A DNA stretch of 64,000 bases from positions 140,277-204,276 of the forward strand of contig NIVC01002201.1 of assembly GCA_002269645.1 (NCBI GenBank), written 5' to 3'. Source of the stretch: Macrostomum lignano. Taxonomy: Eukaryota. The notes below the pieces were generated by a model, which did no database searches, had not been told where the DNA came from, and was given only the letters and a program-made list of their open reading frames with translations. Made by a program: the position numbers and the translations under genes. This document shows, piece by piece, positions 16,716-44,819 of the stretch (the stretch's first letter is position 1; the number at the start of each line of letters is the position of its first letter).

Positions 16716-18030
<1,315 letters not shown>

Positions 18031-18057
18031 AGTAGAGTAGCAGCAGAGTAGACTCAC

Positions 18058-22710: not shown

Positions 22711-25183
22711 ATGAGTACTATTGAAAAAAATTTATTTCTAATTTTCTCTGTTGCACTCACAGAAGCAGCCGCATACCTCACAGCCACAGTCGTGAACCCG
22801 CACACAGTTCTGCCATCTGACTGTCCCAGCTTGAAGTACATCCCATCCAAGCAATCTCTGCTGATTGACTCGTCCGTCAGCAGTGAAGTCGTCAATGTTA
22901 TAAATCTAGCGTCGAAGGCAGAATGCTTGATGGCCTGTCGAATTCGAGCATGCTCTGCTGTCGTTGTCTTTGAGACCAGCAGCTTTTGCCAACTCTTGAT
23001 TGTCAACGATGCGTCGAAAAACGCTGGCCCAGCCGAGAGTCACAAGCAACGTCGGTTAGGCTTCGAAATTGGAGCCAAAATATGGAAGGTTGGAAATTTT
23101 GACGCCATCATTCGAGACAGACAGTTTAATATTTCGAAAGTTGTCAACAGTACGGTCACTTTTAGCAGTAAGTGGAGTCTTAAAATATTATTTGATTTTT
23201 CTACATTTATTTTCTAATCTATAATTATAAGTAAATTGCAAGCAAAATCCATACAGGACTAGAGTAGTGCTATTATATATTCATGTTCTACCGGTAAACA
23301 ACATTAGTTCCAAGCGTTGCTGAAAATTGTAACGCTAAGTGGATTTTGTTCGAAATATTTTTTTACGTTTGAGTATTGAAATTTCAGAGTGACGCCAAGG
23401 GGACATTCAAAATTATAATTCAATTAAAATTCATTTTCAAGCCTACGTCCCTGAGTTCTACGCACTGAGCATGTTGACAGAGAAGATTTTACTCGATTAA
23501 TTACTCTCGAATAATGCAAGCATCAAATTCAGTGCCGGAATGACTACGCCGGAGTAAGGCTACCGACAAAACCGACTGAAATCAAAAACTTTTTGAACTA
23601 GAAGCCCCAAGACATCTATTGCAGTTTGATGATCCAGAGCTTTACTGAGTGTTGAATTTCGTTGATTAAGCTAACAGTTTTTTTAGAAATTAAATATTCT
23701 TATTTTTTATTTAGATTCCAGCGTTGGCCGCCGAGGCTTTGTGCAGCGCGTCCAATTTGAACTGGCCGGTTGCTATCGAATTGAAATTTCTGGCGCCAGA
23801 GGCGGAGGGTCAGATTGTTGCGGCAAGATCGGGGGTAACGGTTCCGCCATCGCTGGAAGCTTCGTTATTGGTGCTGGCACAGCTTTGAGTGTCGTTGTTG
23901 GACAGGCGGGCACCACCGCGACAAGCGACTCTGCTAGCGGCGGAGGCGGCGGCGGCAGCTTTGTGTACCGAGCAAACGACAGCGGATTGCTGATGGCGGC
24001 CGGCGGTGGCGGCGGTGCCTCGTCTATGTTTGATGGAAAGTTTCTTTGGGTCTTTACTTTACTGGGGTCTTCGCTTTTTTCCATACTGTTTAGCTACGGA
24101 GATTGAATGAGAGCTGAGAAATCCTGCTTTAAATTAAAACAGTGTTTTAAAAAAGCTCGAGGTTTTTCACTTGAAAAAAATGTGACGAGCTTGGTGTAGC
24201 TTTTATGATTCTGCCTCTACAGACAGCCATCAGATACTACGAGCTAGATGCTAGATCGTCGTTAGTTTTAGCAACCAGTGATGAAATAATAGCAAAATCG
24301 ACTGTAGCACACATTGCTGACAGCATATTTTATCGTCACTTAAGTGTTACAATAAAAGCCTAGTGCAAGCATAAACCATCTTTGAATACAGACCGCCTGT
24401 GAACTCTAAAAAGACGCTACGGCACTCTGTAATGAACTATAGGTCTTTACAGCTTGCAACAATGTTGTGCGTAAGATCAAGTGAAGCCACAGAAAACGTC
24501 ACAAAAACGTTTTCTCAATTTTATGTCATTCTTTTTCACTGATTTTGACGGTCAAAAAACGTCGAAACTTCAAGAGGACTATAAACAGTATTTGAAATTT
24601 TGCTAGTAAAAATATTGCAAAAGGTGCTAAAATCACTCGTCTCAAATAAAAAAATTTGTCATCTCAAAACTCTAGGCTTGAACGCTCTACACAAAGTCTA
24701 CGGCAGCAACTCGTACGGTGGCATCAGCAACTCTTCGACTATACTAACCACGGGATTCGGTGGCAACCTTGGGAGTCCCGGATACAACAATCCAAGCGCT
24801 ACACCAAACGACCAGTTCCATGGCGGCTGTGGCGCCGGCTGGCTTGGTACGGCACAAATCCAAGGAGAAGCTCCAGCGACGGTGATAGTGGCGGCAGTCT
24901 GGCCAAAGGCTGGACTGGTGGTGTCTCTGGAGACGGCAACATCGGTGACGGCGGCTTCGGCGGCGGCGGCGGTAGCGGTGGCTTCGACAAGCCTAGCAAG
25001 TACGGAGCAGCCGGCGGCGGTGGTGGTTTCAGCGGAGGCGGGGCCGGGGTGAACAATATCGAGGCCGGAGGCGGCGGCGGCTCCTACTGCGGTGGTAGCC
25101 GCTGCGAGTTCGCTGAGGCTTCGCCCACAGAACATGGTCAAGTTGTGCTACAGCTTCTGACTCCGTTTGTGGATACTTGCTAG
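22711..25183 (+). CDS. Secreted PAN/Apple-like + ALK/LTK-type glycine-rich (TG) domain protein; exons 22711-23167, 23715-24035/24039, 24676-25183
   Basis: Hydrophobic N-terminus and a CLMACRIRAC..FCQL Apple-like Cys pattern. YRIEISGARGG, VVVGQAG, GGGGGGSFVY, LLMAAGGGGGA, GGFGGGGG, GGGGGFSGG and HGQVVLQ are colinear with the ALK/LTK glycine-rich ectodomain. No TM helix or kinase follows. The second donor is non-canonical and there is a 1-nt frameshift near 24865. Confidence 0.72.
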
Positions 25184-26104: not shown

Positions 26105-27355
26105 GCCATCAGAATTTCATGAAAAGCAAATTATGAGGCAACTGAGTGCAGTTCAGGGTCAGCTGTTTGCTGTCATTAAGTTTATTTTTAAGAGGTACTT
26201 ACCGCTCCTTCTGGACACACATGGACTAAAGGCTTATCATGCAAAGACTCTGATGTTCTTTATGCTTGAGAAGCACAGAACTAGTTAGTACCTTAGCTTG
26301 GAAGTTCCAAAATTTGATCGTTCTACTAAAAGAGGCACTAGACATGATGGTGTCATAATGGACTCAAGCAGCTTACCTGATGAGTGCATGCCGCACTTTT
26401 TAACTTCTGACGTTCCATTCTACTTTAAGAATGCTGGAATCGGCCGTGACTTTGACAACACAAAAACGAGGGTTCGAGACCGACTTAGCGAGCTTTGAAG
26501 AGATGTCAGTGAAGTGGTCGAGCAGCTAAGAAAACTCGTGAGACCGCTGCAGTCAGAGAAATTTTACTTTTAGCCATTCACTCTGCTTCCACTGAGGACT
26601 TTATTTGATGTCGCTCAGATCAGAGAAGCAACTGATGAGGAGGAGCACTATTTAAAGTACGCTGATGTATACAGGTTGGTCAACAATTGTATTAGTGAAT
26701 TGCAGTCAGAGTCAAACAACAGAGACACTCTTCTAGATGCAAAGTCTCGTTGTTGGAGGCAGCTGAATCTTTTGCACTCGCTGCAGTGGTGCCAGTGCGC
26801 CACCCTATGCTTGACCGCAATTGCGCATCTCAAATTTGGAGAATTTGAGCAGGCTGTGAACTTGTTAAAACAGCTTCAGATGCAGGATATTACACTAGGC
26901 TTGATGCCAAATGAAACTAAATGGATTCAATGGACAAGTCTACCCACTGAATCAGACTGGGCGTGGAGATTCTGCCTTCCTTGTGACTGTCCGCCTCTCT
27001 TCCCTTACCTACCTGAGTTTACTCAGACTCTGTTGACAGCGAGGTTATTGCAGCCTCGCTCCTCCCATCTGTACGTGAACTTCCGCTGCCTGAGCTGGAG
27101 TCTTCAAGCGGAACTGCTGCACGATTGCTCACCGATCAATTTTGACCCGTGGTTGGATGAGTTGAAAGAAGACCCAGACTTGGAGGAGCTGCTCACTCTT
27201 GCCCACTAAAGCGACTGCCGCGACCACGTAGAGTTCTGTGTAGCGACAGATGACAGAGATCGGAGATTAAAAACGCGTCGCCATGGACACTCAGGACTTT
27301 GAAAAGATTAAAAAGGCCAGTGAAAGACTAGAGAGGATCTACTGCACCCGTTTTT
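26105..27355 (+). pseudogene. Mab-21/cGAS-like (cGLR) pseudogene, C-terminal two-thirds only
   Basis: HEKQIMRQLSAVQGQLFAVIKFIFKRYLP..GLKAYHAKTLMFFMLEK, CMPHF..YFKNAG, F*PFTLLP, DWAWRFCLP, SHLYVNFRCLSWSLQAELL and DLEELLTLAH*SDC all match 38181-39606. Several in-frame stops (e.g. ~26570, 27207) and frameshifts. Confidence 0.88.
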
Positions 27356-28789
27356 GACAAAGCACAAATGCTTTGGCACTTTTGACACTGCAATACCAAG
27401 GTTTTGACACTTTTACTCATAGGTGTGTTAGGAAATTGAAATTAGCTAATTGCTAATTTTGTCAAGGACTGAACGAGACTATTCGTGTATGTGTTTATGT
27501 TCTTTTACATATCCGATTGTAACTTTATTTTGTAAAATTTGATGGACAATTTTCATTTTAATATGACCCATGATTTGTAAATTTTTCATTACTAAATGCT
27601 GCTGTGGCAAAGATGGGACAAAATACCGTACATAAAGTTGTAGCTCATTATGCTAGGGTACTTTATATTCTTTGTTTGCTATAGAACATATATATTAGTA
27701 GTAGCCTAAAATGTGATTGCCAATAAAATTTGACTTCCGAAAATTTAGGTTAGGGTTTATGTTAAGGTTATGGCTTGCACTAAGACCATCAGTCGATTTT
27801 TTGGCAGTCAATAATTAGTTTTTATGATTCCAATACTTGAATAAAATTTTAAGTCCTATGTCAATTGTTAGAATAAATGACAAATAATAATATTAATAAA
27901 TAATAATAGCTGTCGATAATTTCCAAGCAGTCTTAACGTGGAGAAAGAATCTCACCAGCTAATCATGATGAAGATTCATTATACTGGATTTTCACGAAAC
28001 AGAGAGTTTGGTATAGTCGTGGATATGCACACTCTATTGTACCTCGTAGGCCAAAAAGGTATATGGATCCACGAGTGAGCTAATTTTAATTCAAGCATTT
28101 TCATTTCTCTTTGGTCCCCCCTTTTTATGCTGATTTTATAAATGCCACACCAGTAGATCAATTTAAAAGCAATCAGATCAGACCTGGTTTGAAAATCGGT
28201 AAATAGCCCGGCCGGAAAATTTCATGCGCTGTGTGGTGCAATATTTTACTTTTATCAACGCAAGAAAAGTCTCGTTATTTAGTTTTAAAAGCCCCGCTTG
28301 CTTTGGACGTACAAGCATTACTACTTACAGTAGAATCTTGCTAGTGGTGTGTAATTTTTAGTTTTCTACTCACAAGTTAATTTATAGAAACTGCAAGATC
28401 TTATCACTGATCGAACTCAGCAACAACAACAGCAACATGATTCACAAGGCAGATTCCTGGTCGGTTGGCGTTAGAAAGCAGTGAGCAGGCAAGGCATTTG
28501 CGCGCCTGCCCTCGCCGAAGCGGTACCTGTAACGCAGCAGCAGCAACTGTTGCACTGGCTTTAAGCAGCACTGTACACTGTAATTTTGTAATGCATTTCT
28601 GTCCAGCCTCTGTTTCTGAAAACGGTTCTATTTAGGGTAGACAGGTATGTACGCTCTTACTTCACGTATGAGATACTAGTATAGTGAGAGACTTAAATAG
28701 GCATATAAAAGCCCGAGACGACCCACTTTTTATTCTACTTTTCTCACCCGCCTGATAGCTAGCAGCAGCTTTCTTGAAACAATTCGAGC

Positions 28790-31608
28790 ATGGCCTACCA
28801 AATTTCGATGCAAAAATCGCTCGCGGCAGCTGCCATTCGAGCCAAAGACTCGCGTCGACTTCTACCGATCTGCCAAGAGATGAAGTCGAATTTCATTCTC
28901 ACTATCGACCGTTTCGAACAGTCGGTGGCTCACCATATTGCGTGCTTGCCTAAAAACTGTCTCTGCTGCCTTGAGGCTCTTACTTCTAGGCTTGGACCCG
29001 ACTGCCTCACCTGCTTGAACAAATTAAACAATACTCCGGTGCATCTAGCCGCTCTATACCAAGACGAGTCGTGGATGAGGTTTGCCCACCAACTCGTTGG
29101 AAGTGACTGCTTCTATCAGACGGGCAACAACGGTCGCAACGCTTTTCACAATGCCGCCTTAAATGAAGTGACAAATTCTGTTCTTAAGTGGCTTGTTGAG
29201 CAATGCGGTGTCGATTGTTTATCTGTTCGCGACCAATTCGGCAATACTCCAATACATCTCGCCGCTTTGAAGCAGGATGAGGATTCATTGCATCTCTTCC
29301 AGACAATCCTAGGATGCGACTGCTTTAGTCAGTCTAATAGCAGCAACCAGAATGCTGTTCACTTTGCTGCTATGAATGTACGGCAAAGTTCTTCCCTCAA
29401 AATGTTGGTCTCACTTCTTGGTTCGTCCTGCTTATTGACTAAAGACTCAAATGATGCGACCCCTGTCCATTTGGCTGCTCAATATCAAGATGTGGACTCG
29501 CTCCGCTTCATCTTCAATTCATTGGATTGCTCAGCATTCAATCTCGTCGATGTTAGCGGAAAGACTTTGGCCGACTATGCGCAAGAAAACACTCTGCACG
29601 GGGAGCAGATACTGCAGTTAATCGTTGAAATAAAGGAAACACAGTCGGAGCAGCAGTCCGAACCGATACAAGAGATGGCCTGCTTGCAAATGCAGAAGCA
29701 AACGGAGCAGCAGCAGCAAGAAGAACAGCAGCAAGAAAAACAGGAGGAGCAGCAGGAGCAGAAACAGGATGAGCAGCAGGAGCAAAAACAGGAGGAGCAG
29801 CAGGAGCAGAAACAGGAGGAGCAGCAGGAGCAAAAACAGGAGGAGCAGCAGGAGCAAAAACAGGAGGAGCAGCAGGAGCAAAAACAGGAGGAGCAGCAGG
29901 AGCAGAAACAGGAGGAGCAGCAGGAGCAGGAGCAAAAACAGCAGGAGCAGCAGCAGGAGCAAAAACAGGATGAGCAGCAGGAGCAAAAACAGGAGGAGCA
30001 GCAGGAGCAGAAACAGGAGGAGCAGCAGGAGCAAAAACAGGAGGAGCAGCAGGAGCAGGAGCAAAAACAGGAGGAGCAGCAGGAGCAGAAACAGGAGGAG
30101 CAGCAGGAGCAGGAGCAAAAACAGCAGGAGCAGCAGCAGGAGCAAAAACAAGAGGAGCAGCAGGAGCAGAAACAGGAGGAGCAGCAATATGAAGCCAAAG
30201 AAGACCGGAGTCCTGCGTCCAATCGGAACTCCTTAGTTAGGTTTGTACTCGTATTTGGTGTGTACTGAAAATGCAACCAATAACGCATATTACAGATGCG
30301 TTACAAGTTCAGAAGAAAATTTGCTGTAAATAAGTTTTTTCATGAACAAGCCTAAATAATTCCGTTTTACATATTTATTCAGACGCAAGCTTCCACTGGA
30401 CCCAGATTTCACGAATTGGGACTTCCTCTACGACGACGAAGGCAATAAGCAACAAATTGGCGAAGGCGGATTCGGCCAGGTGTTCAAAGTCTTCACCGAC
30501 AAGCGGCAAACTGTGGCCGTCAAGATTGTTCAGCTGGAAATTGTGGGCAACCTGAAGCTTCTAGACCAAGCGGTTGAACAGGAGAACGCGGAGATTGCTG
30601 TTCTGAGAAGCATTCGGCATCCAAACATTCTGAAGTTTCTCAAGTCTCAGCGCACCAGGAACCACAAGTTGTGCATCTTTACAGAGCTCATCGCCGGCCA
30701 TAGTCTCACTGATCTGATGCGACGTCAGCGGAAACCGTTTGATGAATGCGCCATCAGGGATTTTTCTATGCAGGTGGGTATCATACTAAAAATATGAATT
30801 AGCATTCTCGGAGAGTGGCGAATAGTAAACGCGTTAGGGATTCGATTCGGTGGTTAATTTGCTTTCAAATTAGCAAATTTGGAATCCACCCGTGGCTACG
30901 GGCTACGAAGGCTACGAAGTTTTTACCTTTTTACGGATTTGAGCGAAAATGGGGGCCTTGCCGTTTAAAACAGTGTGTACAGTATAACGGTTGCTGCGCC
31001 TAAGGATGTACGCGTCATTATCATCTGGCTGTGGGCATCTCCTGCAAGCTAGATGTAGTTATCTAAACTGTCTTCTAAAGCATAAATCCTTGCTCTACTT
31101 TTAAAACTATTACACTGTAAATTTACAGATTTGCATCGCTCTCAACTACCTGCACAGTCGTAATCCCGTGACGCTGCACCGGGACATCAAGTGCAGCAAT
31201 ATCATGCTGAGTAATAAAGGCATCATTAAACTGATCGATTTCGGCCTCGCCAAGGAGATCTTTCACAGCATTGGTAGCACTAAAAGTCTCAGCGGCACCG
31301 TCAACTTCATGGCTCCAGAGCTGTTCAACGAGGAAGGCAAAACTGTGTACTCACCCAAATCGGACGTATGGGCGTTTGGCTGCACAATATACGAAATGCT
31401 AACGATGGAGCCGCCAAACTCAGAGCTGGGTTGGCAGCAAGTCGGATTCCGAATCCAGAAAAATCCTATGCCAGATCTCCCAAATGGTGTCTCCGACAGT
31501 CTGAGGGATTTTTACCGTCGCTGCGTTGTGAGGAATCCTAAGAGTCGAGCTGATACCGACGAACTTCTGGAGCACATGTTTCTACCTAAGGTAGATTGCC
31601 AGCGATAA
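28790..31608 (+). CDS. Ankyrin-repeat / QE-rich linker / Ser-Thr kinase (STE/NEK-like), 773 aa; exons 28790-30240, 30383-30773, 31129-31608
   Basis: About 6 ANK repeats ([45 protein letters not shown]). Kinase motifs [23 protein letters not shown] and DVWAFG are all intact. Introns are GT-AG and phase-matched; the 2322-nt total is divisible by 3. Confidence 0.92.
29700..30185 (+). repeat. Coding tandem repeat, 24-bp unit CAGGAGCAGAAACAGGAGGAGCAG (QEQKQEEQ)
   Basis: About 18-20 near-identical units, in frame within exon 1 of the ANK-kinase. Confidence 0.95.
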
Positions 31609-31938
31609 AGGACAAGTAGCTACGCTTACAAGTGTAATGGAGACCGTTTGAACTTAAAAGTTTTAACAATCAACTAAAATGGTCTATTGTCCGTAGCCAA
31701 TATTATTATTTTTGCTGAAAATTTCCCACAGTTTATCATTTTGTGAACAATTTTTGATGTACTAATGTTTATTTACTTTTTTGTTAAATCTTTTTAAGTA
31801 GCTGGTCTTAGTGTCGTTAAACGCAAAATAGCTATATATTTTTCTCGACCATTGTTGCTTAGACAAGTCCAACGTTACCGCTGTAGCTATTATAAAATGA
31901 TTCAAATGTTTTTTTTGATAGATTCTGAAACTTCCAGT

Positions 31939-31940
<2 letters not shown>

Positions 31941-31993
<53 letters not shown>

Positions 31994-32007
31994 CCTCCCT
32001 CTCTCTA
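31941..32007. repeat. (CT)n microsatellite
   Basis: Directly visible dinucleotide run. Confidence 0.95.
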
Positions 32008-34369
32008 TCTCTTTCTTGCTAGAAAAGAGCATGAAAGATAAGAATCGCAAGCTAAGGAGCTCCAGAACAATAATGGAGTCTGTTTGGCTGTTGCTTCTAT
32101 TATGCATTCGGTTTGTTTTGTATTTCAACGGTATGCCGAACCGTGCGCACTACTAGTACCAGGTATCATGCAAACTCCTATAGCTACGTGGCTATGCCAG
32201 ATTGTTGCAATGCTTCGGGCCGGGGTCTTGGATTCACAGGACAAAACTTTATTTAGACAGCCATTAAATCCGTCAAAGGCTTCTTTCGCGACTACAGCTT
32301 CTTATTGTTGCATGAGAGGCTACAATACGTTTTGTACGCCAGAGTTTTGGTCTAGAAGCCAAATTTCAAGACATTAGATATAGCTCATTTGCTTGCTACA
32401 CCAATGCTACTTTTAGTAGTCTGTGTTGAATTCGATCTAAACAACATTCGTGTTTAGTTATAGTATATTAGGAATGTTAATTAACACACTAAAATCAATA
32501 TATTGCTCAATATAACACTCAATATAATGCTAATTCTTTACTGCTATAATATAATAAAATATAATGCTAACTATATTCTACCATTTAGAAAAGAAAAATT
32601 TTACTTCTTGCAAATGTCATCAGAAGCGTAATATTATTTCTGGACTAGATAATCTACGATCATGTTCAAGCAAATGTAACATGCACTACAGTTGAAGACA
32701 CTAAAACAGAATCATTTTTTAAATAGCGAAAATAGAACACTCACAAAAGTCAGAGATACTAAGGTATCTCTTATATCTCAGAGGTAAGGTATAATAACTA
32801 ACTGTGTCGCTCACGAAAAATGCAGAACCATTTAATTTTCTTCTTTATCCTGTTTTGCCCACTCCAGACTGGCGCAGACTCGAATTTTATTGAAAAATAA
32901 AATCTGCTAATTACATCGACAAGCTGTAAGATATTACACATACAGTTATACGCTCGTATGAGGAAATAAGTGTACCCATTCTACGAGCGTATAGATGTTG
33001 CGAGCAGCTAGCTCGTACAGGTCCTATAGCTAAGAGAGGACACCGCGAGAGAGACGAGCAGCTAGGTAGAATTTGAAAGGTAGAAAAATCAGCTAATCTG
33101 CATGGAGATTAAACTAATCCGTCGCCACCAACCCGTACGAATTGAGTTTTCTGATTTGAAGGGGCTGCCCTGCCAACTACATGTACAATAGTGTCTTTCA
33201 GCTGTCAATCTCAAACGCATGTGGACTCCAACCTTTAGCTTAGCTGCACGTCTGAGCTCGCGTTGAGCTCGCAAAGAAATAAAGTAAAACAAATTATCTG
33301 AGTTGCCTTCTCACTATACTCAAGTTGACCCAGAGTGAACAAGCTACTGCGTCTCTTACTCTCTTAGTACAAAACGCTGGATTTCTTCCTAAAAAAATTC
33401 AGCTCATGAAAACAAGCAAGCAAAGAGCAACACCCAATCAAAGTACAGAAGCAGTGCCACATAAAAGAGTACTCTCAGTTAAGCGGGTTCAAGTAGCCTC
33501 TTTTCCAACCAATCAGATGCTAGAGACTGCCAGTGATCAAGGAATCCTAAGCACCAGACAGGTCACTGAAGATGGTGTCTTCCAGTTTTATGTCGCTAAA
33601 CGGGGAGGCGACGTCACGATTCCGTCACGATTCCCCAGAAGGGAAATCAGCAAGTTGGGGAAGGGGATCGCGGGGTTCTCCAGCCAGTCTTTCATGTAGT
33701 TAATCCAAATATGTATCAAGAAGCCTAAGGGATTTTGCAAAATCAAGGACTACCAGACTAGAATTGTTCCTAGTGGTCCTTGTGCAAAATACTAGCTAGA
33801 ATTTCGAATTTGCGAACTACATTTCTACATGTACTAGAATCCAGAATTAATGCAGAAACAGTGCAGAAATTTAAATAATTTTGCCTATGTATGTGTACAT
33901 CGAAAGCGCGCATAATTTTAATGTGACATTTTCTGTATTCAAATTTTATCGATCATGACACTGGCAGAGTTTTCGATTGCAGCTATTAGTAATACGACGT
34001 TGAATGCGCTAACTAAATAAAAATGATAAAGATCAAATGTTAAATATTATTAAGTTCCTTTCGTCATTAAGTCATTATGAACTTTTCCTTTTGCTGAAAC
34101 AGCGGCGTACTGAAGCCCGGAGGAGTAACTGCGTAGTTACGGCGAAGTTACCGCGGAGTAACCACTGAATTACCTTGGATTTACCTGGGAATTACCTCGA
34201 TTTTACGCATATTTCTTATAAATTGTCAGGGTGGGCTCTAAAGCTTTATACTCGTACAAGCAGGCTCGGTTTTAATCTACCTGCAAGTGTCCAAGCTTAC
34301 AATTATTTGCAAACCAAGTCTCCTTTTTGTTTGGCACAGCTGCTACGACTGTAGCACACGCGGTGAGTA

Positions 34370-35146
34370 GTTGCATATACGACACGCTTCGATTAAACTT
34401 CATACGTTCGTAAATAAAGTGCCTGAAAACCTGACAAGTGCGCTTGACGATTGTCCAAAAGGAGTGGATGCCTTTCTGATTGTCCTAAGATACGATGTCA
34501 GGGCGACTGAGGAAGAACTAAATGCTGCCAATGATGCAGTCAAATGTTTGGCCCAAAAGCTTTTGAAAGAGCGATCATTGTCTTCACGCATTGTGAAAAG
34601 CTTAATGGCAACAATAGAGGCTTTCAAGAATATCTGAAAAATAAACTATGCCCTGCAATTCCCAAGTTCAGAGATCTGCTGTCGAAAGTGGGCGATAGGG
34701 TCACCATGCTGAGTAATGACAAGAGCGATGCCAACTCCGAGTTAAGACAGCAGCAGATCAATGACCTGTTAGAACTAATCGATGAAGTTGCACAGCACAA
34801 CAAAAAGCGCTTCAAAAAAACGGATCAGGAAACTGAGTCAGACGCGCAAAACCAGATGGTGATGATTTCTGGCGCTCTACGCCAGACCCAGCAACTGCAA
34901 GTGGCACAGCAGTCGCAGATCCAACAAATTCAGCATCTGTTCATGATTAAGATGATGCTGGAAATGCACGCTCGTGAGTTCGGTATGGCAATGGAGGTAC
35001 AACGCATGAGAATGCGAGAAACATTGGAACAGGAGCTAAGAAATCAAAGGTTGGAAATGCAATATCAGCAACGAAGGGCAATCGAAGTCCACGTACATGA
35101 AAGAGAGAGAGAGAAGGCGACTGCTCTATTCTATAATCGATTTTAG
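34370..35146 (+). pseudogene. AIG1/GIMAP-like GTPase fragment with coiled-coil tail, frameshifted, G1 (P-loop) not found
   Basis: CPKGVDAFLIVLRYDVRATEEELNAANDAVK / MFGPKAFERAIIVFTHCEKL..FQEYL..FRDLLSKVGDRV..QQQINDLLELIDEV follows the AIG1 consensus (PGPHAFLLV..RFTEEE..LFG..IVLFTHGD). 1-nt deletion in the A-run at 34542-34544. Confidence 0.75.
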
Positions 35147-38100
35147 AAGACTAAAGATCGACTTCATTTTTAAAAGTCCAAAGTCACATTGTGACGTTGC
35201 CAGTTTAAAGTGGTCCCGAGAGGGGCCGTCGGACTGTAACTCCTCTACAATTTCTCCAATCGTTTATTTTAACGTTTACTTGTAGTAGTGCCCAATGAAT
35301 CTGTACCTATCGCTAATTCACTGCCCGTTTTGCTATCCTTTCATGCGACCGTAGAAAACTTGCACGATCGATAATTTTAAGTTCTTTAGCCAGCCAATGA
35401 AAACCACTCGTGCTTCGCGCTACCCCCCCCCTCTGCGCTCCTTTATTAACCCCTGCCTGGCGGGCTGGGGGCCTCCTCACCTCTTGGCTTCTTGTCTGGT
35501 TCTCGCGTTCTTCTCTTGTCTGGCTGCCTCGAGCCTCCTTATCTCTCGCCACGGCCCCTCTGTCTGGGCCAGCCTGTTTACACTACTTCACTGTGTTCCG
35601 CCACGGCTAACGCCAATCTCGCCACTACTCATCTGCCTGCCTACTGCTACTCACTGCCTTCACTGTGCTCATCGCCATTGCTCATAACGTTGCGTTGCCA
35701 CCGCATCATTCGCCTGCCACTGACTTCATATTCTAATTATCTTCAAAACCATTGTTGCAGCCGCCAGTGCCCAGAAAGCTATAGTTTGTGTATTGACAGT
35801 AATAACCAGTTCTAATATTGATCTCAACAATAAAAACAACTACGGCAGTTTCCTGCCTTTATCGCCAAGTGCTCCGCTACACAATCCGATTTGCAAGAGT
35901 TGACTTCGATTTATTTTGGAACTACGACTTACTGCAACTCTCGTCAAAACGGCCCTTTTAAGGGTCATAGCCATAGCCAGCCGCTACATCAAATAATCGT
36001 GACACACATAATTTCTAAACAGCCCTAAACCATATATTTTTCAGGTGATTCAAAAGTAGTCGGACGTATATACTCGATTGCACTTTTCCACCCCTTTGTC
36101 TATTTTTGTATATTCATCTATTGAAGCGATGTTTATCTTATCGCTGCATCCCTTCTGTACTGATTGTAATGAAACGTTAATAAAAGTGTCACCATTGTAG
36201 TGTAACCCAGTCAGTAGCGAATTTACGTTTTACAATTTTTACGATATGTATCTATATATAGAAGAATTAATCACATTAAGAGCTGAATGGTTCCATTGGT
36301 AGTAATTTCTTTTGGTGTGATTAATGTGTGATTTTTTGTTTATCATAATCATTTAAATAGCTTTGTTATCTCGAATATATATTTATGGAAGCGTTAACCC
36401 GATATTAGCATCTTCATACCAGCTGTTTTACAGACTCAAGGCTTGCCTCCGACTCAAATTTAACAAGAAATTTATTTAAAAACTGAAGACAGGAGGAAAA
36501 ATTGAAACCCCAACCAGGAGTCAACCGGACTTTGATGCTCGATGTGCTCCTGAGGCCACAAACCCCTTAGGAATTGTGGGAGTGTACGCTCTGCGCCGTA
36601 ATAATAATGTACGGCTGGCTTGGTCGATAAATTCGTAGCAATATTCTTATTACGCAATACTGTCGTGCCTATAAATATATTGAATTGAGCAGTCGGCTCA
36701 TTTAAGCGCATCGTTTCTCTCGCCAAACTAAATAGCTAGTCTGAGTCATTACAGGAATTAAAGGAAAAGTTACGTTTCTATATTGAATTTTAATGACGCT
36801 GCGCAGACAAACTATTGAAAAGGAGAAGACCAAGGACCACTAGTAGATAGTAGATACTTAAGTAGTCCGTGGAGAAGACTCTTTGATTTTTCTCACATTT
36901 ATTTGAGTGACATATCTTCCGATACATCTAATCTAGTAGCTGTCACTAAAGTGTGACGGGATTGAATTAGTTGTGAAATGTCATTGTTTTTACTGTCAGT
37001 AGACTAATACGTAAATGTATCCTATTTTGTGTAACTTGTGTGTACATTCTTGCAATTGGGTTTTATATATCAGCATGTGATAAATTTCTAGCCAATCGAT
37101 AATCTTGCCCAGCGCCCACGTAACTATCAACCAATCATAATTCGCTGCTACTATCTATTGCTTTGATCTATTTTTAATAACTTGTTTTCTCGTAGCTACT
37201 CTAAGAAACTTGGCCTACTCAGCAAGCTAAATATAATCACTTTCTTGGACAGCTATATGCATATATATTCTGCTATGTTCGTTTTTGAGTGCCAAGGTCT
37301 GCTACGCTGCGACAGGTTTAATTCGTCCCAAAAGTATGCATTCGCGTAAAAATTGTCTAGTTACTTGTAACAGTTTGTTTAAATCACGCAAATAGAAAGC
37401 AGTAAAATGACATGTACTATACATGTAGTTTATAGTACATGTTCGTATTATATTACATGTTCGTATATTCGTAAATAAATAAGAACCACTTCAGTAATAT
37501 CAATTTAATAGCAGAATCAAATTAAACATATTGCACAGTCAATTAAAGCGATGAGCTTCAAGATTATGGAAAAATTAGTATAATCATTCATGAATTCGAA
37601 TTACTGTAAACAATTAGCCAAGCAAAAGTACGAAGCACACTGCAAGTGAATTCTCCATGATCTCATCATAGTAGCCGTGTATGTTTTGGTACGTCTTTGT
37701 GGATCTTAGATTGCCTTTTAAATGTTTTGTTGTGTCTTTGTTTGTTTTGGTGCGTCTTGACGCGTCTTAGAGTCCCCGTGATGTATCAGTGTTTCTTGAT
37801 GTGTCTTTGTAGTGTGTCTTTATGCGTTTTAGTGTGTCCTGAATGTGTTTTGGTTTAGATGTTCAGATTTTTTAAGTCCTAAAAGCAATTGGAGCTAAAA
37901 GGCTGACAGTCCAAATTCAGAAAAATTTTTGTTGATTCTAAAAAGTTTCTAGACTTCTAACTGCTGTAGAACTACCTCAAGTACTTTACTGCAGCTAATC
38001 TTCTTTCTTTAGTACTTTAAGTACTAAATGCATCTATACATCTTCATCAGATGTATATTTAAACGATATCGAAATAGAACTCTTAACAGAAAATCTTCAG

Positions 38101-38180
38101 CGTATGTACGAGTACAAACAAAAGTTCGTATTTTTTAAGCTTGATAAATCTCAAGCCGTACGAGCGTGCCTGGCATTAAA

Positions 38181-39606
38181 CTACAGACTGTCGCATTGAA
38201 TTTCCAACTCACTGCTGACGTTTGACTTCTCAGCTTGAAGCATCTCAAGCTTTTTCGCAATAACCCCGAGTTTTTTTCGATCCCGAATAGTCATCGAAAG
38301 GCTGCCGTTCTCCTTAATAGTAGCTTGCTCCAAACTGAACTGGAGATGCTCCGGACAGTCACTGTAATGAGCCAGGACTAGGAGCTCTTCTAGATCGGCG
38401 TCCTCTTGCATCTCATCGTACCAATCTTGAACGTTATAATCGTTTTTCTGAAGCAGCTCAGCTTGCAGGCTCCAGCCAATGCAACGGAAATTAAAGTACA
38501 AATGTGAGGCCCCAGCAACTGAAAGCCTTGCTGAGATGAGAGAACCAGTGATGGCCGGTAAGAAGTGAAACTGAGCCTCTTTTAGGCTGGGAATGCAGAA
38601 TCTCCAGGCCCAATCGGGACCACGATCGTCAAGCAGGCTTGCTGTAAGGCTTCCACTTGAACTCCACGCTCTTTGCACCCTATGACTGACAAGTTGTTGC
38701 GCTAACCTGGCTGCTTCAGCTCGATTTGACTGTCTTAACAGGGCTATTATTGTCAGGCACATCCGCGTACATTGAAATACCTCTGGTAGTGAATTTAGCC
38801 TAGAAAGTAGAAGGTCGATTTGACAAGTTTCTGATTGAAGATCATGGATGCACCTTTGAACTGTTCGATAGGCTTTTAAGAGCTTTGTCGTGCTGGTTGG
38901 ATCTACGTTGGAAACTGAGTTTGGCTGACCGGTCAGTGGCAGCAGAGTGAACGGGTGAAAGAAGAAGCAATTTGAAGTGAGCGTATCGACATGATTTCGG
39001 ATGGAATCGACAACAAGGTTTACGTCATTTCGCAGCTTCGACAAGAAACGTCTAACTTTTGATTTAGTAGAATTAAAGTCTCCACAAGTTGTGCCAGCAT
39101 TCTTAAAGTAAAGTGAAACGTTTTCCATAAAGAAGTGCGGCATGCAAACGTCCCGAGAATGGCTCCAATCAAGAAACTGAAGCATGAGATCCAGAGACTC
39201 CTTGAGCAAGGTAACAATGTTGAAGCTTTGCCAAGCAGTAGTATCAGAGCTATATACTTCTCCATCATAAAGAAAAGCAAGGTTTTTGCGTGATAGGTTT
39301 TCAGCCCTCGCGTATTGAATTCTTTTGGTAGCTGATGCTTAAATATGAATTTGAGGAGAATGAACAATTGGCCTTGAATTGAGTTCAAGCTCCTCATAAT
39401 TTGCTTCTCGTGCAGGCTGAAGCTAATCCTCAATTCGTTTGATTTATTGGGTCTATAAGCTCTGACTAGATGCACATTGACTGGCTGAGGGATGATTAAC
39501 TGACGAATTTTCTCTTCGCAAAGGCTGCTACAGCATGGAAACGCTTGGCATGTGTCCTGGGCTGGTCGAACGCCGCATCCGTCAATTCTCACAGCCGGAT
39601 TGCCAC
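38181..39606 (-). CDS. Exon 3 of repeat-ANK-cGLR gene: third catalytic Asp, Mab-21 C-lobe and helical extension (1-nt frameshift near 39255)
   Basis: Acceptor cttcag|GT at 39607, phase 1. QDTCQAFPCC, ELRISFSLHEKQIMRSL, LKTYHAKTLLFF (Mab-21 signature) and CMPHFFMENVSLY. Stop at 38181. Confidence 0.85.
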
Positions 39607-40728
39607 CTGAAGTTAGCAGTTTGCATTTAATTTTATGCGATTTTTAGCGCACGGGTGGGTGTATTTTGATGCCTGACTTTGTTTTCAGATAAAATTAAAA
39701 TTAACAGAAGCTCACAGAAGGCACGATAAAATAAGAAAACAGCCATGGTATAGTGTGCTAATTTAAATTAAACAGCAATACTTTTAGTTGTCGGTTTGAG
39801 ATCCTTCACAAATTATTTTCTATAGCTATCTCCAAAGTGGGAGCGTATAACTCGTTATTTGTATATTATTTTGCCGCCAGCTGTTTATTTAATCTATGCT
39901 CTTGATCTCTAACTGTAATTTCATGTGTTTTATTTGCTCCATGGCCCGACCAAGAAGTTATGAGCAGCAGGCAATCCCGAATATCTCTTTAGTTCTTCTT
40001 TGACTTCGAAAGGTACGAAATATGCGAGTACAAACTGTCAGTCTCTCGGTTTTTAATTGTCAACAACCGAAGGACAGAATTTTCTCAGTTTTTTGTTTTA
40101 AATTTTCGGTTTTCACGCACCAGGTTAAAATTTAATGTACCGATCGACTTCTGGTTGCAAATTAAGCTAGTAGCTACGAGCTACAAGTAAGCGGTTTCCT
40201 TCAATGTTGTTTAAGAAGTTTCTTCGACATAAACAACTGAATTACGAGTAGAAATAAGCTAGACTTTTCTCTTAGAAAGTTTTCGTAGAGCTGGAGGCCG
40301 ATAAGGAACGTATACTCCTCAGAACCTTAAAAAATGTAAATCTACAACCAGAGAACGGATAAATTCGGTCAAAATAACTTGCATTGAAAAAACCCGATAT
40401 ATAGTGGCTTAGTAGTTCAGTTGTCTATGCGGGTAAGCAAGCAAAGTTTCGCTGAAGTTTAATTTAGTCGTTACACAAAGTAAATTTTTGTGAAATGTTT
40501 GCACATAAAAACTGTATTTTTTACGCTTTCACTTATTTAGTTTGATAAACTTTGGATAAAGCACGTACGACGTACTTGCTTCATTTTCACTCACAGTTCT
40601 CGAGTACAGTGTCATTTTAATCAAGTTTTCTGGGTAGTTCGAAAGTGACTTAACTTTCTTTCGTTTTATGTCGATACAATCGAAATCTTGAACTTTCAAA
40701 GACAATTCTGAATTGAGTTCGAACTTAC

Positions 40729-41090
40729 CAACGATAGTTGATACTTGTGTATGACCATCCACCAATGTTAGTCTAGCGACGCCTGCGCATTTACAGCCGC
40801 CTTCAAGATGGAATAATTCGTCACCAGCAATTACGGTCCAGTCGATGTCAGAGTCTGACGCTATTTTTCCATTCAAATGTTTTAAACTGAAGCCCCAGCC
40901 TTCAGAGTAGCTTCCAGTCATGTATCGTGATTCCTGCGTGAATGCCTGAACTAATTCTTCCAGCGAATCAGCAACCTCATGTTGAAAATGTACCCTGGTG
41001 AGCTTGAAGCCAGCATTGTTGAGCAGACGATGCAGATCTTCGCTCAGTCTCTCATCAACTTGTTGTTCCTCAGCTAGAAGTTTCGCGAAT
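40729..41090 (-). CDS. Exon 2 of repeat-ANK-cGLR gene: nucleotidyltransferase catalytic motif
   Basis: cttaag|A TTC GCG... opens FAKLLAEEQQVDERLSEDL..MTGSYSEGWG..ASDSDIDWTVI (GS..DxD Pol-beta superfamily signature). It ends GTT G|gtaagt at 40728, phase 1. Confidence 0.88.
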
Positions 41091-41337
41091 CTTAAGAATA
41101 GAGCAAAAATGAAAATTGAGTTTCAAATCAAGTTAACCTTGTAATACCGCAAAATTCTATTTAAAACTGAATAGAATACACACTCACTTTGGTTGATTAA
41201 CTTGTAACTCAGTTTCTTGTCTGTACTGCTTCCTTTCGTCTGTAATCCTATGGAAGAAATGAGGAAAATTTATCCGAAACATTGCAGCACTTTAAATTGC
41301 CTATAATTATTGTTGATTTAATCAAGGTTTAACTTAC

Positions 41338-43754
41338 AACGCAATCGAACCAATATGATGTTGAAGTTTTTCAAGCACATCAAAATGTTGGAATTGTTCA
41401 GCCAACTGAGCACAGCTCTGTCCGTTCCGGTCACGATGTTCGATGTCTGATCTGCTATCGATCAACGCCATGGCAACTCGAAAATGACCAGCAATGCAGG
41501 CTCGAGACAACGCAGTCCTACCGAACTCGTCCTGAACACTTACCGATGCGCCTTGAGCGAGTAGATGCTCTGCTAATTCGCACTGTCCAGAATCTGCGGC
41601 TAGCATTAGCGACGTGCTGCTCGAATCGATCGGTTCGTCAATTTGTTTCAAGTGTTGCAGCAGGTTAAATACTATTGGAACGTAGCCATCCGAGATGCAC
41701 TTGGCCATAAGCCTGAGATGTTGCGCGTGAGCTAAGTGAGGCAGAATCTGCTCAAGTGCAGGAATTTTATTCTCATTTGAGCAGCTTATTGCGCTGCGCA
41801 CTAAATCGTGCAGCATCCTGTCTTCAAAAATGAATTCGCAATTTTCGGGACTGAAAATCTGCTTTATTTTGTTTCGACCAGCGAATTGTAGAATGCCTAA
41901 AACAAAATTCCAATGGCCATGCGAGATTGCAACCTTTACGACCTCAATGCAGCAAAGGTTTTTGCTAGCTTCGCAACTAATAACTAGAAGCAAACGTTTG
42001 ACCACTTCAATTTGGCTTCTTGCTGCAGCGACTTTAGCTGCCTCTGTGCAGAGCTTCTCTTTAGCCGTTTGGTCTGAAACTTCTTGCACCATGCTGATCA
42101 CCATATCCCACGAGCGCTGCCGGGTAGCCGTCTCGACCAAGCGAATCCAGCAGGCGTCCCTGGTGCTTGGTTCACTGATGCTCCTAGCAGCAGCCTGAGC
42201 TTGCTCCCAGCTGGGCCGAGTGTATCTAGCTGCAATAATTGCCAAGTCGGCGCTGCATTGATCCTTCAGTGGAAGTTCGCTGATTGTTGTCCTGGCTAGG
42301 TTAGCCATCTCCCAGTTGCAGTTATGGGCTGCTGCTTTGGCGGATTCAATGCAGGTGAATATAACAATGCCTTTGTCTTTTATTTCCGCTAGAAAATAAT
42401 CAAATTCACCTGACGCGCCCAGTCGAGAGGCAGACTTTGCAGCGCTGCTGCAGGCATGGCTTCGAACCGATTGATCTGCTATCAGACCCGCTGTGTACTT
42501 ACTCGTCTTCCAGTCTCTTCTAGAAGCGGCAGATTTCATGATTACTGAGCAGCACTCATCTTTCAGATTTGTGTCAGAAATACTTTCGAGTTGCTGCCTA
42601 ATAAATTCTGGTTTACTAAACTCGAAAGCGGATCTGGTCAAAATGGAAACGCGTAGTTCTTCCTGTAGACGTTGATCAGAAATTGTTGGTAATAATTGGT
42701 GCACAACATTCCGATGGCCTTGAGATGCTGCGGCTTTAATAGAGTTACTGCAGCATTGGTCCTTATGATTAGGATCCGAGATGATGCTCAGAATGCTGGA
42801 CACAACTTCGGCATAGCCTTGGCTAGCAACATAGGAACAAATCTTATTACAGCAATCGAGCCTCACGTTGTCATTAACTATGGATTTAACGAGGCCAATA
42901 ACTGTAGTCCACTGGCTCTGGAACTTCGCCGGCCATTCAATGTCCTCGAGGCGAATGTCACTTGATTTCTCCTTGTCAGTCAATAAGTTAACGTACGCAG
43001 CCATCTTGTCACGATAGTGTGACGCCGCTGATGCGGCCGCTTTGCGACAAAATTCATCTCTGGCGTTCGGATCGGACATGAGGTGGACTAGATTAGTGAC
43101 TAAGCTCCAGCGATCTTTCTCGCTAGCAGACATTGCTGCAATAATGCACACGGAATCCCGAATTTTCAAATCTGAGACGAGTTTAACAACTCTCAAGGCC
43201 GTTCTTTTCTCGCCCCACTTGGCTGCCCGTTGAGCCAATTCAGAGACGCACTGCAGCTTCAGGTCTTCATTTTGAATGATCGTTATTACGCGAATGGCCA
43301 CGGCCCATTGGCAATTTTTGGCTAGCATTCTAACCGCGACTGCACAACGATGATTTCTCATACGTCTATTGTCGATCGCTACTAAAAACTGGGCCATGGA
43401 TTCCCAGCGACAGTTTCGTTGTGAAATATCTATCAGCTCCAGTAGGAATTCGTCCAAATCTTCAGCGTTCAGTTTCTGATTGACTGACAGAACATTGAGA
43501 ATCTGTCTAACCGTGAAAGCGTCTCCGTTTTCAGCTGCGGATCGAGCCATTTGACAGCAGGCGAGCTGAAGGTCGTCTCGAGATCCAAACAGGTCAATAA
43601 GTCGGACTATCGTCGGCATGATAAATGTGCAGCGATTTTTAGCGGAAGCTTGCCGTAACAGACAAATATTTCTGCTTTGCCTCGAATACGTCTCGCCCCG
43701 CGATCTATTTGTATTAGTTGGCACATTACAAAACGTGCGTTTGCGTTTTACCAT
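41338..43754 (-). CDS. Exon 1 of repeat-ANK-cGLR gene: ~17 degenerate 33-aa helical repeats plus 3 canonical ankyrin repeats
   Basis: An 805-codon open frame with periodic ISD....D.C...A..AA..G.W..V..L, then SLMLAADSG, FGRTALSRAC and NGQSCAQLA. It ends TT|gtaagt (donor 41337, phase 2), matching the phase-2 acceptor at 41091. Confidence 0.85.
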
Positions 43755-44819
43755 TGAGCCGTTACTACCGATTTCCTCAAATAAAATCTAGACTGTTGCA
43801 GAGTATGCTGGATGTGTTACTGCCTCTGATTTTTGACGAGCGATACACTATATCGTTCTTTTTTACATTACAGAGAGCTAAACTATCATGCCACGGAAAT
43901 GCGGCCATAACTGTAGACTACTCGTGTGCATGTACAGGGGTAAAGTAACAAAAATACGTACTGCTCAATTAAAGCATGACGTACACAGCATTCTAAGACC
44001 ACTGCAGAGAACTTGTGCTGATAGAAACACTGTCGACACAGATAAAAATTTGGTCTGTATTTTTTACCCCAAATGCGACTTCATGATTTGTATAAGTTGA
44101 TTGAACTTGCAGACACAAATTGAAAGATACATGGGTACACTTTCACATGTAGCCGCATGGTGGCACTTCATGCGATCACCATTAGTTACCCAGCGTCACC
44201 CCAGATACATGTAATTTACATGTACACGAGCTAACTCATATTGCGTACTGCATATACGTACCCCCGAATTATTCTTGCCAAGAAACAACAAGTAAATGTA
44301 AGCTCACATGAAACTGTACATGTATATGGACTATATACATTTACACTGTACAGTTCAGTTGAGTCAATATATCTACATGTATGGTGATTCTTGATCTGTG
44401 GGCGAGCAGTTTAGGTCCAATAGGTAAAGAGAGGGACGGCGAGACAAGCAGGGAGAATTTTGAAGGTGGAGCTAATCCGCAGATTAACTAACCCGCTGCC
44501 AACAGCCAGTGCACCGGCTCACCAAACCGGAGCTTTCGAAATCGGGCTTCTGGCTTCCGGCTTTGCACTTACCAGCCAACGAGTGTCTTTTTGCTGTCAT
44601 TCTCGAAGTCATAGCCGATGATAAGGGACACCGCTGGGACTCGATCGTATTGGCCATGCAGGGACGCTGATGATAGACTAACTCGAACTTTAGAGATGTT
44701 GCTGCGGGCTGGCTAATTTTGCCCGAGCAGATTTAGTTATATACTCGTAGATGTATCCCCCAGTTGCACTGGTGCAGCAGTCTATGGTTTAATTGTTTAT
44801 TTCATTTATTTGCACTGGA

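Follow-up and report, generated by a model that had tools for sequence, protein, structure and literature searches.

A probably live, unannotated ankyrin-cGLR gene in 18 kb of Macrostomum lignano DNA, most plausibly a neighbourhood formed by chance or by birth and death

Within 18 kb of contig NIVC01002201.1 of Macrostomum lignano lie sequences related to Mab-21/cGAS-like proteins (two copies), to ankyrin-repeat kinases, and to AIG1/GIMAP GTPases. Do they form a co-regulated sensor-signalling island, as a preliminary description of this DNA proposed, or are they neighbours for other reasons? The window that we analysed is 64 kb of this contig. All four elements were found where they had been placed, inside positions 26105–43754 of the window, and they are of uneven quality. 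Their assignment to the Mab-21/cGAS-like, ankyrin-plus-kinase, and AIG1 families is essentially right, according to Pfam and tblastn.

The identity of the locus was confirmed by record L005, which is 100% identical to positions 18790–41608 of the window. A sister contig, NIVC01000505.1, carries a 99.5% identical copy of the region, with the four elements in the same arrangement. In this stretch, the GenBank annotation has the kinase gene only. The DNA nearby is rich in transposons: ORFs for a LINE endonuclease, reverse transcriptase, and RNase H lie at 44.9–52.8 kb, and there are more pieces of reverse transcriptase and integrase elsewhere. The features are, in window coordinates:

26115..27340, + strand: copy A, a 5'-truncated ANK-Mab21 (cGLR-like) pseudogene fragment (tblastn of P0001, P0003, and P0010; DNA read directly)
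28790..31608, + strand: BOX15_Mlig007464g2, an intact three-exon gene for an ANK-repeat and STE-group kinase of 773 aa (Pfam, protein identity, annotation)
29650..30200, + strand: (EEQQEQKQ)n, a low-complexity repeat rich in Glu/Gln/Lys, as the linker between the ANK module and the kinase domain (ORF translation; present in P0036)
34371..35146, + strand: AIG1/GIMAP-derived relic, with the C-terminal two thirds of the AIG1 domain and a coiled-coil tail (Pfam AIG1 after frameshift correction)
38181..43754, - strand: copy B, a three-exon gene that the annotation misses and that encodes about 1,400 aa (ORFs, tblastn, splice sites, Pfam)
41338..43754, - strand: copy B exon 1, with about 18 degenerate 33-residue ANK-like repeats and then three canonical ankyrin repeats (ORF listing, Pfam, autocorrelation)
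40727..41091, - strand: copy B exon 2, the first half of the nucleotidyltransferase core, MTGS..(20 aa)..DIDW (tblastn to P0001 residues 169–288; AG acceptor and GTAAGT donor read)
38181..39603, - strand: copy B exon 3, the remainder of the nucleotidyltransferase core, whose third acidic residue lies in RPAQDTC, then the Mab-21_C helix bundle, and then a helical C-terminal extension (tblastn, Pfam, PDB profile)
39251..39252, - strand: TA insertion (2 nt) in a TATATA run, which puts copy B exon 3 out of frame (DNA read; NIVC01002201.1 only)

The kinase gene is annotated on both contigs. Splicing its exons (about 28790–30241, about 30370–30780, and about 31130–31608) gives a product that is 100% identical to the BOX15_Mlig007464g2 protein (P0036). 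In Pfam, the N-terminus matches Ank_2 (5e-23), and two exons match Pkinase (1.4e-10 and 8.7e-32). The GxGxxG, VAVK, HRD, DFG, and APE motifs are all there, and by its sequence the kinase is catalytically complete. In the PDB, it matches MST3, MST4, and ASK1 best (about 1e-40). Compared to STE-group kinases (MST3, MST4, STK25, ASK1/MAP3K5, and plant MEKK-type MAP3Ks), the kinase domain is 37–40% identical to MAP3K and STE20 kinases.

ILK, TNNI3K, and RIPK4/ANKK1 likewise join ankyrin repeats to a kinase, but the kinase class of BOX15_Mlig007464g2 is unlike that of ILK, TNNI3K, or RIPK4. Also, its ankyrin module consists of a distinctive double repeat (about 60 aa), which sets it apart from both groups. 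In M. lignano, caspase domains are also fused to this module (49% identity to P0055). The ANK-kinase family comprises at least 40 clusters.

On the opposite strand, copy B has a gene model that is missing from the annotation of both contigs. The 806-aa ORF of exon 1 ends at a stop codon inside the GTAAGT splice donor, both introns are canonical (GTAAGT...AG), and all three exons are joined in frame. Residues 716–799 match Ank_2 (1e-17 in Pfam). Residues 40–640 have a sharp 33-residue autocorrelation peak and a faint match to the ANK profile, which points to degenerate repeats. Exon 1 aligns with the N-terminal parts of M. lignano homologues. At the other end, the helical C-terminal extension is conserved and spans roughly 300 aa; we found no fold match for it. 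The preliminary description had noted that two genes here share a design of N-terminal repeats and C-terminal enzyme. The architecture is indeed shared, but the two repeat modules are unrelated beyond both being of the ANK type, and the kinase would be regulated via its own ankyrin module.

Is copy B a cGLR? Li et al. 2023 (PMC9980059) look in cGLRs for the active-site signature h[QT]GS-X(8-20)-[DE]h[DE]h-X(50-90)-h[DE]h, for sequence homology that spans the nucleotidyltransferase core as well as the C-terminal helix bundle, and for a predicted structure that resembles known cGLR or CD-NTase enzymes. Copy B has M-T-G-S, 20 residues, D-I-D-W, 55 residues, and Q-D-T, which agrees with this active-site criterion, with the caveats that the GS-to-DxD spacer is at the upper limit of the published range and that the third aspartate is flanked by Q and T instead of hydrophobic residues. 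In an alignment of nine family members, including copy B, the residues G55, S56, D77, D79, and D136 are invariant.

Once the frameshift is corrected, copy B matches Mab-21_C from Pfam with 26.6 bits, as compared to the gathering cut-off of 24.1 bits (6.7e-6). A PDB profile search with its helix bundle found cGLR1 (8gjy; 1.4e-5) and cGAS (about 2e-4). The nucleotidyltransferase core did not match PF03281 (the Mab-21 nucleotidyltransferase model in Pfam) or any sequence in the PDB. For the family member P0010, the best 50 Foldseek matches in the PDB were all cGAS, MAB21L1, or MB21D2, with a probability of 1.0 but with E-values of about 1e-2 and TM-scores of just 0.32–0.43, and the nucleotidyltransferase core of its AlphaFold model is poor (pLDDT below 50). 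Human cGAS, MB21D2, and MAB21L1, which also match the helix-bundle domain best by sequence profile, are 15–20% identical, and they lack both the ankyrin fusion and the C-terminal extension.

The family has been catalogued before. Table S3 of Li et al. 2023 (PMC9980059) lists five M. lignano cGLRs (entries 89–93), and the catalogue includes BOX15_Mlig016402g1 (P0004 in our analysis) and BOX15_Mlig001946g3. The same study noted cGLRs that are fused to ANK or TPR modules, and it screened five M. lignano constructs. It reports 15 active cGLRs; its main text does not mention Macrostomum or name any M. lignano enzyme among them. It also describes most flatworms as lacking cGLRs beyond Mab21-like proteins, and the TLRs of flatworms as reportedly lost.

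We considered whether the ANK-Mab21 proteins might be non-catalytic scaffolds, like MAB21L1/2, or nucleotidyltransferases that act on another substrate, so that "cGLR" would be a mislabel. The lack of a match to the Pfam model of the core, the 20-residue spacer, the unusual neighbours of the third aspartate, the low-confidence model of the core, and the silence of that main text about an active M. lignano enzyme would all fit. On the other hand, divergent paralogues all keep the GS, the DxD, and the third D, which would be unexpected for a dead scaffold, and Li et al. curated members of this family as having complete active sites. Overall, we think that a scaffold or another substrate is unlikely. 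Motif conservation is the one line of evidence that copy B would be competent as an enzyme.

If the ANK-cGLRs work like other cGLRs, then binding of a ligand would trigger the synthesis of a nucleotide second messenger. Copy B is in the same family as the catalogued M. lignano cGLRs (43–54% identity), and it shares the Mab21/cGAS fold signature and the N-terminal ankyrin repeats with the animal cGLRs that have ankyrin or TPR modules. It differs from the catalogued proteins in being a divergent, unannotated paralogue with an unusually long repeat region (about 800 aa, with a 33-residue period) and in its conserved C-terminal extension. The pI of its core is about 6.7, or neutral to acidic, as compared to above 8.5 for the nucleic-acid sensors in PMC9980059. 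This suggests that the ligand is probably a protein or another molecule that is not a nucleic acid, which would be captured by the ankyrin solenoid.

The ANK-cGLR family has about 98 clusters at 50% identity (matches with E ≤ 1e-10), and all of the clusters that we sampled (10/10) were from M. lignano. Copy B is part of a lineage-specific radiation, as are the cGLRs of bivalves and corals. Together with the size of the ANK-kinase family and the pseudogene debris, this bears out the earlier statement that these families are expanded and turn over rapidly.

The second Mab21-like element, copy A, is a dead fragment. By tblastn, it is 61% identical, in a single frame, to residues 353–729 of P0001, an ANK-Mab21 protein of M. 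lignano, and it retains nothing but the Mab-21_C part and the C-terminal extension. Upstream of copy A, tblastn found no match to the N-terminal half of the family; the nucleotidyltransferase core is absent, and the region with the cGLR active-site motif is wholly missing. The tblastn alignment shows in-frame stops at about 26286, 26497, 26572, and 27210, and the sequence of copy A is identical in NIVC01000505.1. Because it has four in-frame stops and no core, copy A is dead. Of the "two Mab-21/cGAS-like genes" in the preliminary description, only copy B is a gene.

The "GIMAP-like GTPase" is related to AIG1, but it is not a GTPase. With its frameshift corrected, the piece matches AIG1 from Pfam with E = 3.2e-20, but only across profile positions 71–205 of 212. 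Like many GIMAP/AIG1 (IAN) GTPases, it combines AIG1 homology with a coiled-coil tail; unlike them, it lacks positions 1–70 of the profile, which hold the G1 P-loop and the switch regions. We found no further match to AIG1 in the three forward frames of 31650–34600 (2.7 kb upstream), and no Walker-A motif (G....GK[ST]) on the + strand of the whole window. By eye, the stretches that align with G3 and G4 of GIMAPs read IRHAS and THCEK. Because it lacks the P-loop, this relic is, judging from its sequence, not a GTPase and cannot bind GTP in the canonical way. We did not find a close homologue of it. In NIVC01002201.1 the relic has a 1-nt deletion at 34547; NIVC01000505.1 lacks the deletion and has an uninterrupted ORF of 258 aa. 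Between the two contigs, pN/pS for the relic is 0.48.

Could copy B be a young pseudogene as well, with a real frameshift and few other lesions so far, so that everything but the kinase is a gene graveyard? The TA insertion at 39251–39252 does shift its frame, neither contig has it annotated, and both copy A and the AIG1 piece next to it are clearly dead. But the insertion is absent from NIVC01000505.1, where exon 3 is an uninterrupted ORF of 470 aa, and indels within short repeats are a kind of error typical of assemblies from long reads. Also, the insertion is the sole lesion: the splice sites are all canonical and in frame, and the 806-aa and 470-aa ORFs are otherwise free of stops. Finally, pN/pS between the two contig copies is 0.14, which indicates purifying selection, with the caveat that this value is from just 12 substitutions (4 non-synonymous and 8 synonymous). 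We consider it improbable that copy B is a pseudogene. Because the sister contig lacks the insertion and because of the low pN/pS, we think that copy B is probably alive and is likely, from its sequence, to be a functional gene.

The preliminary description had stated that several members of the cluster are decaying. This is correct for copy A and the AIG1 piece and doubtful for copy B; the sister contig lacks the frameshift of the AIG1 piece as well as that of copy B. Still, copy B is unannotated, and frameshifted on NIVC01002201.1, and may be silent or dying.

To return to the island, recurrent linkage elsewhere in the genome had been set beforehand as one of its tests. We used tblastn to search 10 kb on either side of nine other loci and found no neighbours from the other families, either at the ANK-Mab21 loci (0/4) or at the ANK-kinase loci (0/5); linkage that is rarer or looser than this would escape the search. 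On the one contig among them that has both families, the ANK-Mab21 and ANK-kinase genes are about 600 kb apart. As far as we checked, then, linkage does not recur, and the proposed island fails this test because none of the nine loci has a cross-family neighbour within 10 kb. By chance, families of this size would be expected to give roughly one adjacency per genome.

A functional, co-regulated innate-immunity island, with a cGLR producing the messenger and the kinase and a GTPase acting downstream, is very unlikely: the fusions of ankyrin repeats to enzymes do look like pattern-recognition receptors, strong expansion is seen in both live families, and the four elements lie within 18 kb in an arrangement that is kept on both sister contigs, but the supposed GTPase has no P-loop, one of the two supposed cGLRs has four stops and no catalytic core, none of the nine paralogous loci has a cross-family neighbour, the annotation covers the kinase only, and the conservation between contigs that are 99.5% identical reflects recent common descent instead of selection for linkage.

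The stretch contains one intact ANK-kinase, one probably live but unannotated ANK-cGLR gene, and two dead fragments, all from very large species-specific families. We consider it likely that this is not an integrated signalling unit and that the two live-looking genes lie amid the debris of big families. In our preferred reading, unrelated members of M. lignano-specific families would sit beside dead copies in a neighbourhood formed by chance or by birth and death; most likely, they came to lie together as abundant families underwent birth-and-death duplication in DNA that is rich in transposons.

Within 12 kb, the kinase has a Mab21-like copy on either side, an arrangement that fully random placement makes less likely. 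At another locus (L003), Mab21-like copies lie clustered together as well, which tempers this oddity.

The cluster as such matters little, because its linkage does not recur and half of its parts are dead. What matters more is that the annotation of M. lignano misses a very long and probably functional ANK-cGLR gene. The cGLR radiation in this species is far above the 1–5 per genome that is typical of animals, and it features ankyrin fusions and a conserved C-terminal domain. Also, one ankyrin module is common to the kinase and caspase families.

We speculate, as a rather unlikely but broader view, that M. lignano has a private, combinatorial repertoire of intracellular receptors. Ankyrin solenoids would be the variable sensors, and they would be wired to cGLRs (about 100 divergent paralogue groups), to STE-type kinases (at least 40 groups), and to caspases that carry the kinase's ankyrin module. 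This locus would be a birth-and-death hotspot, and copy B would be a cGLR that senses proteins instead of nucleic acids and has a new C-terminal regulatory domain. M. lignano can be made transgenic, and if these families are immune receptors, it would be a tractable system for studying cGLRs that do not sense nucleic acids.

The gene families that the preliminary description assigned to positions 26105-43754 are correct, and the decay noticed there is real: one Mab-21-like copy has in-frame stops, and the AIG1 piece has no P-loop. The relevant features are:

26115-27340, + strand: copy A, a Mab-21-like fragment of a putative cGAS-like receptor (cGLR), matching the ANK-Mab21 protein P0001 (770 aa) in a single frame, at 61% identity over P0001 residues 353-729
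28790-31608, + strand: the ANK-kinase gene BOX15_Mlig007464g2, with three exons and a spliced product 100% identical to P0036 (773 aa)
34371-35146, + strand: the AIG1 piece, derived from a GIMAP, in two overlapping frames that are joined once a 1-nt deletion at 34547 is corrected
38181-43754, - strand: copy B, an ANK-cGLR gene with three exons
41334-43754, - strand: copy B exon 1, an 806-aa ORF, ending in ...GCGTT/GTAAGT
41091-40727, - strand: copy B exon 2, with an acceptor (...TTCTTAAG/A at 41091) that keeps the frame, ending in G/GTAAGT
39603 to the stop at 38181, - strand: copy B exon 3, with the acceptor ...CTTCAG/GT at 39603

Positions 18790-41608 match NIVC01002201.1:159066-181884 (GCA_002269645.1) at 100% identity, which places the DNA in M. 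lignano, a free-living flatworm. The same region is present at ~99.5% identity on a sister contig, NIVC01000505.1, which is either an allele or a recent duplicate, and which served as an internal control. The two contigs differ structurally between copy B and the AIG1 piece: positions 35188-38120 (~2.9 kb) correspond to 16398-18676 of the sister region (~2.3 kb), and only pieces with ~90% identity could be aligned, between flanks of ~99.5% identity. An indel or the turnover of repeats is the probable cause.

Copy B is most likely a live gene, because its ORF is intact on the sister contig, its exons are colinear and in frame, and its pN/pS is low. M. lignano homologues are colinear with copy B over all three exons, and the stop codon of the 806-aa ORF lies within the consensus splice donor that ends exon 1. 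The sole lesion is an extra TA within TATATA (39251-39252). The sister contig lacks this insertion, and exon 3 is a continuous 470-aa ORF there. Either one allele carries the indel or the assembly is in error at this site. Twelve changes separate exon 3 of the two contigs, 4 of them non-synonymous and 8 synonymous (pN/pS = 0.14), which is consistent with purifying selection, albeit from small numbers. Two other gene models were rejected. An 8-nt "intron" (GTATATAG) to explain the frame change is far too short, and the sister contig shows a 2-nt insertion instead; a micro-exon between exons 1 and 2 would not keep the frame. Copy B is missing from the GenBank annotation on both contigs, and an exact-protein look-up of the 806-aa ORF returned no match, so the gene is unannotated.

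The protein encoded by copy B is a long ankyrin solenoid followed by an enzyme. Across residues ~40-640, autocorrelation has a sharp peak at exactly 33 residues and a second at 66, which points to ~18 degenerate repeats with the ankyrin period. Three canonical ankyrin repeats (Ank_2, 1e-17) come next. The enzyme part is 43-54% identical to at least 35 M. lignano proteins with ANK and Mab-21_C. Pfam found no Mab-21 match above threshold in the raw ORFs of the window, but frameshift-corrected copy B matches Mab-21_C above the gathering score. In an alignment of nine family members, G55-S56 (within MTGS), D77-I-D79-W, and D136 (within RPAQDTC) are invariant. These residues conform to the published cGLR signature, h[QT]GS-X8-20-[DE]h[DE]h-X50-90-h[DE]h (Li et al. 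2023, PMC9980059), although the first spacer, at 20 residues, is at the upper limit and the third aspartate has polar flanks. Also, the core of copy B has a pI of 6.7, whereas nucleic-acid-sensing cGLRs have pI >8.5 (Li et al. 2023, PMC9980059).

Profile and structure searches also bear on the predicted fold. Because full-length proteins mostly gave ankyrin matches in a profile search of the PDB, we used the trimmed core instead, and the family profile matched cGLR1 (8gjy; 1.4e-5) and cGAS (~2e-4). In the AlphaFold model of the Mab21-family protein P0010, mean pLDDT is 66.6 and the nucleotidyltransferase core is below 50. The top 50 Foldseek matches of this model in the PDB were all cGAS, MAB21L1, or MB21D2, with a probability of 1.0, but with E ~1e-2, TM-scores of 0.32-0.43, and that low-confidence core. 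The ~300 residues after Mab-21_C are conserved in the family (WAWRFC.P and HLY.NF.C..WSLQAELL) and are modelled as mostly helical. A fold search with this C-terminal extension gave nothing significant, only generic helical or TPR-like matches (best E = 0.31).

Both contigs have the ANK-kinase gene annotated, and its two copies are identical. Exon 1 covers the ankyrin module (Pfam Ank_2, 5e-23) plus a linker of the form (EEQQEQKQ)n, and exons 2 and 3 encode a complete kinase domain (Pfam Pkinase, 1e-10 and 9e-32) with all of the catalytic motifs, including APE. Among solved structures, the STE-group kinases MST3, MST4, STK25, and ASK1 are nearest (E ~1e-40), and the best matches outside of M. 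lignano are plant MEKK-type MAP3Ks. The family has at least 40 clusters in M. lignano. The ankyrin module (28790-29650; compared with proteins P0046 and P0055), a distinctive double repeat of ~60 aa, shares 49% identity (E = 9e-81) with the N-terminus of P0055, an M. lignano ANK-caspase, so one sensor-like module is shuffled between kinase and caspase effectors. It has no specific similarity to the repeats of copy B.

Copy A is a dead 3' fragment. It spans only the Mab-21_C part and the C-terminal extension, and no match to the ankyrin or nucleotidyltransferase half was found anywhere upstream of it in the window. It has in-frame stops at ~26286, ~26497, ~26572, and ~27210 and a degraded segment around the conserved tryptophan, and the sister contig has exactly the same sequence. 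Copies A and B are not a recent tandem duplication, since comparing the window DNA with itself revealed no similarity between them. Directly upstream of copy A (22711-25183, + strand) are exons for an ALK/LTK-type glycine-rich domain (Pfam PF12810, 3e-11, at 23741-24103).

The AIG1 piece is a P-loop-less relic and not a GTPase. We ran Pfam on forward-frame translations of its region with stops masked as X. The joined piece matches AIG1 (E = 3e-20), but only at profile positions 71-205 of 212. In the 2.7 kb that separate the piece from the kinase gene, no forward frame has AIG1-like coding, and the whole window has no Walker-A motif on its + strand. By eye, the stretch aligned with G3 is IRHAS and that aligned with G4 is THCEK. 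On the sister contig, an extra T at the site of the 34547 deletion gives an uninterrupted 258-aa ORF. The contigs differ by 20 substitutions in 777 nt of this piece (pN/pS = 0.48), and this 2.6% divergence is ~5 times that of the surrounding DNA (~0.5%). A k-mer homology search found no relatives at E ≤ 1e-3.

These results bear on the proposal that the region is a co-regulated innate-immunity island, running from a nucleotide messenger through phosphorylation to a GTPase effector. This functional reading does not hold, because the AIG1 piece lacks canonical GTP binding, copy A lacks the catalytic core, only the kinase is annotated, and the linkage does not recur at nine other loci. Specifically, we used tblastn with the window kinase, the ankyrin module, the AIG1 piece, and Mab21 sequences to search the 10-kb flanks on both sides of nine other genes: four for ANK-Mab21 proteins and five for ANK-kinases, the latter including the two closest paralogues of the window kinase. 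None of these nine flanking regions (0/9) had a member of another family, and the annotated neighbours are unrelated (for instance, innexin, Rad4, a short-chain dehydrogenase, and Tim29). One contig, NIVC01000085.1, has both families, with kinases at ~0.32 and ~0.39 Mb and a Mab21 gene at ~1.0 Mb.

We also estimated how often such neighbours would arise by chance. The M. lignano assembly is ~0.76 Gb. If there are on the order of 150-300 Mab21-like copies, including pseudogenes, then the chance of one copy in a 25-kb neighbourhood is roughly 0.5-1%, and with several dozen kinase loci, ~0.2-1 kinase-Mab21 adjacencies are expected per genome. Extra Mab21-like fragments surround the ANK-Mab21 gene for P0005 (NIVC01000114.1; locus positions 75-332, 6221-6376, and 22960-23280), so members of the family also occur at other sites in the genome as local tandem groups with decayed pieces. 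Because Mab21-like copies cluster together, the two on either side of the kinase do not count as independent.

Transposons are abundant in the region, with LINE endonuclease, RT, and RNase H ORFs at 44.9-52.8 kb and RT and integrase fragments elsewhere. Two LINE 3' ends in inverted orientation (RNase H and the C-terminal part; 44814-46446 and 51249-52878) are 98.7% identical and lie on either side of a full LINE. This element has gag-like, endonuclease (49042-50196), and RT (50199-52181) ORFs, and its RT-RNase H region is interrupted near 52180. On the - strand, a Dishevelled-like gene with PDZ and DEP domains (12861-14387) is accompanied by polyglutamine-rich exons (19175-19894), possibly of the same gene; an annotated 767-aa gene there ends near 19.9 kb. 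A near-perfect trinucleotide repeat of ~1.4 kb (16675-18120; GC skew +0.67) translates as poly-Thr, poly-Ser, or poly-Val, depending on the frame, and a second tandem-repeat block is at 14759-15945. A 508-aa ORF (6346-7872, - strand) resembles a multi-pass membrane protein and has no Pfam match at E ≤ 1e-3.

As for the family, an exhaustive phmmer search of 1.8 billion representative proteins, with P0010 (which has no ankyrin part) as the query, returned 98 clusters (50% identity level) at E ≤ 1e-10, of which 66 had E ≤ 1e-30. In many of these clusters the proteins have 1,000-1,400 aa and carry Mab21 in their C-terminal half, and all 10 clusters that we sampled are from M. lignano only. Some cGLRs are known to bear ankyrin or TPR modules (Li et al. 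2023, PMC9980059). Table S3 of that study lists five M. lignano proteins that were cloned for a biochemical screen, including BOX15_Mlig016402g1 (P0004) and BOX15_Mlig001946g3 from the same subfamily, so the family was already curated as cGLR. Among the active enzymes in its main text, Macrostomum is not named, and none of the papers searched ties Macrostomum to cGLR by name.

We propose that the ankyrin solenoid of copy B would bind a ligand or partner, and that binding would free the cGLR core from inhibition so that a nucleotide signal is made; the kinase would act independently of the cGLR. Copy B is an unannotated, unusually long, and probably functional ANK-cGLR paralogue that adds to a family already catalogued. 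More broadly, the sequences suggest a very large flatworm-specific radiation of ankyrin-plus-enzyme proteins.
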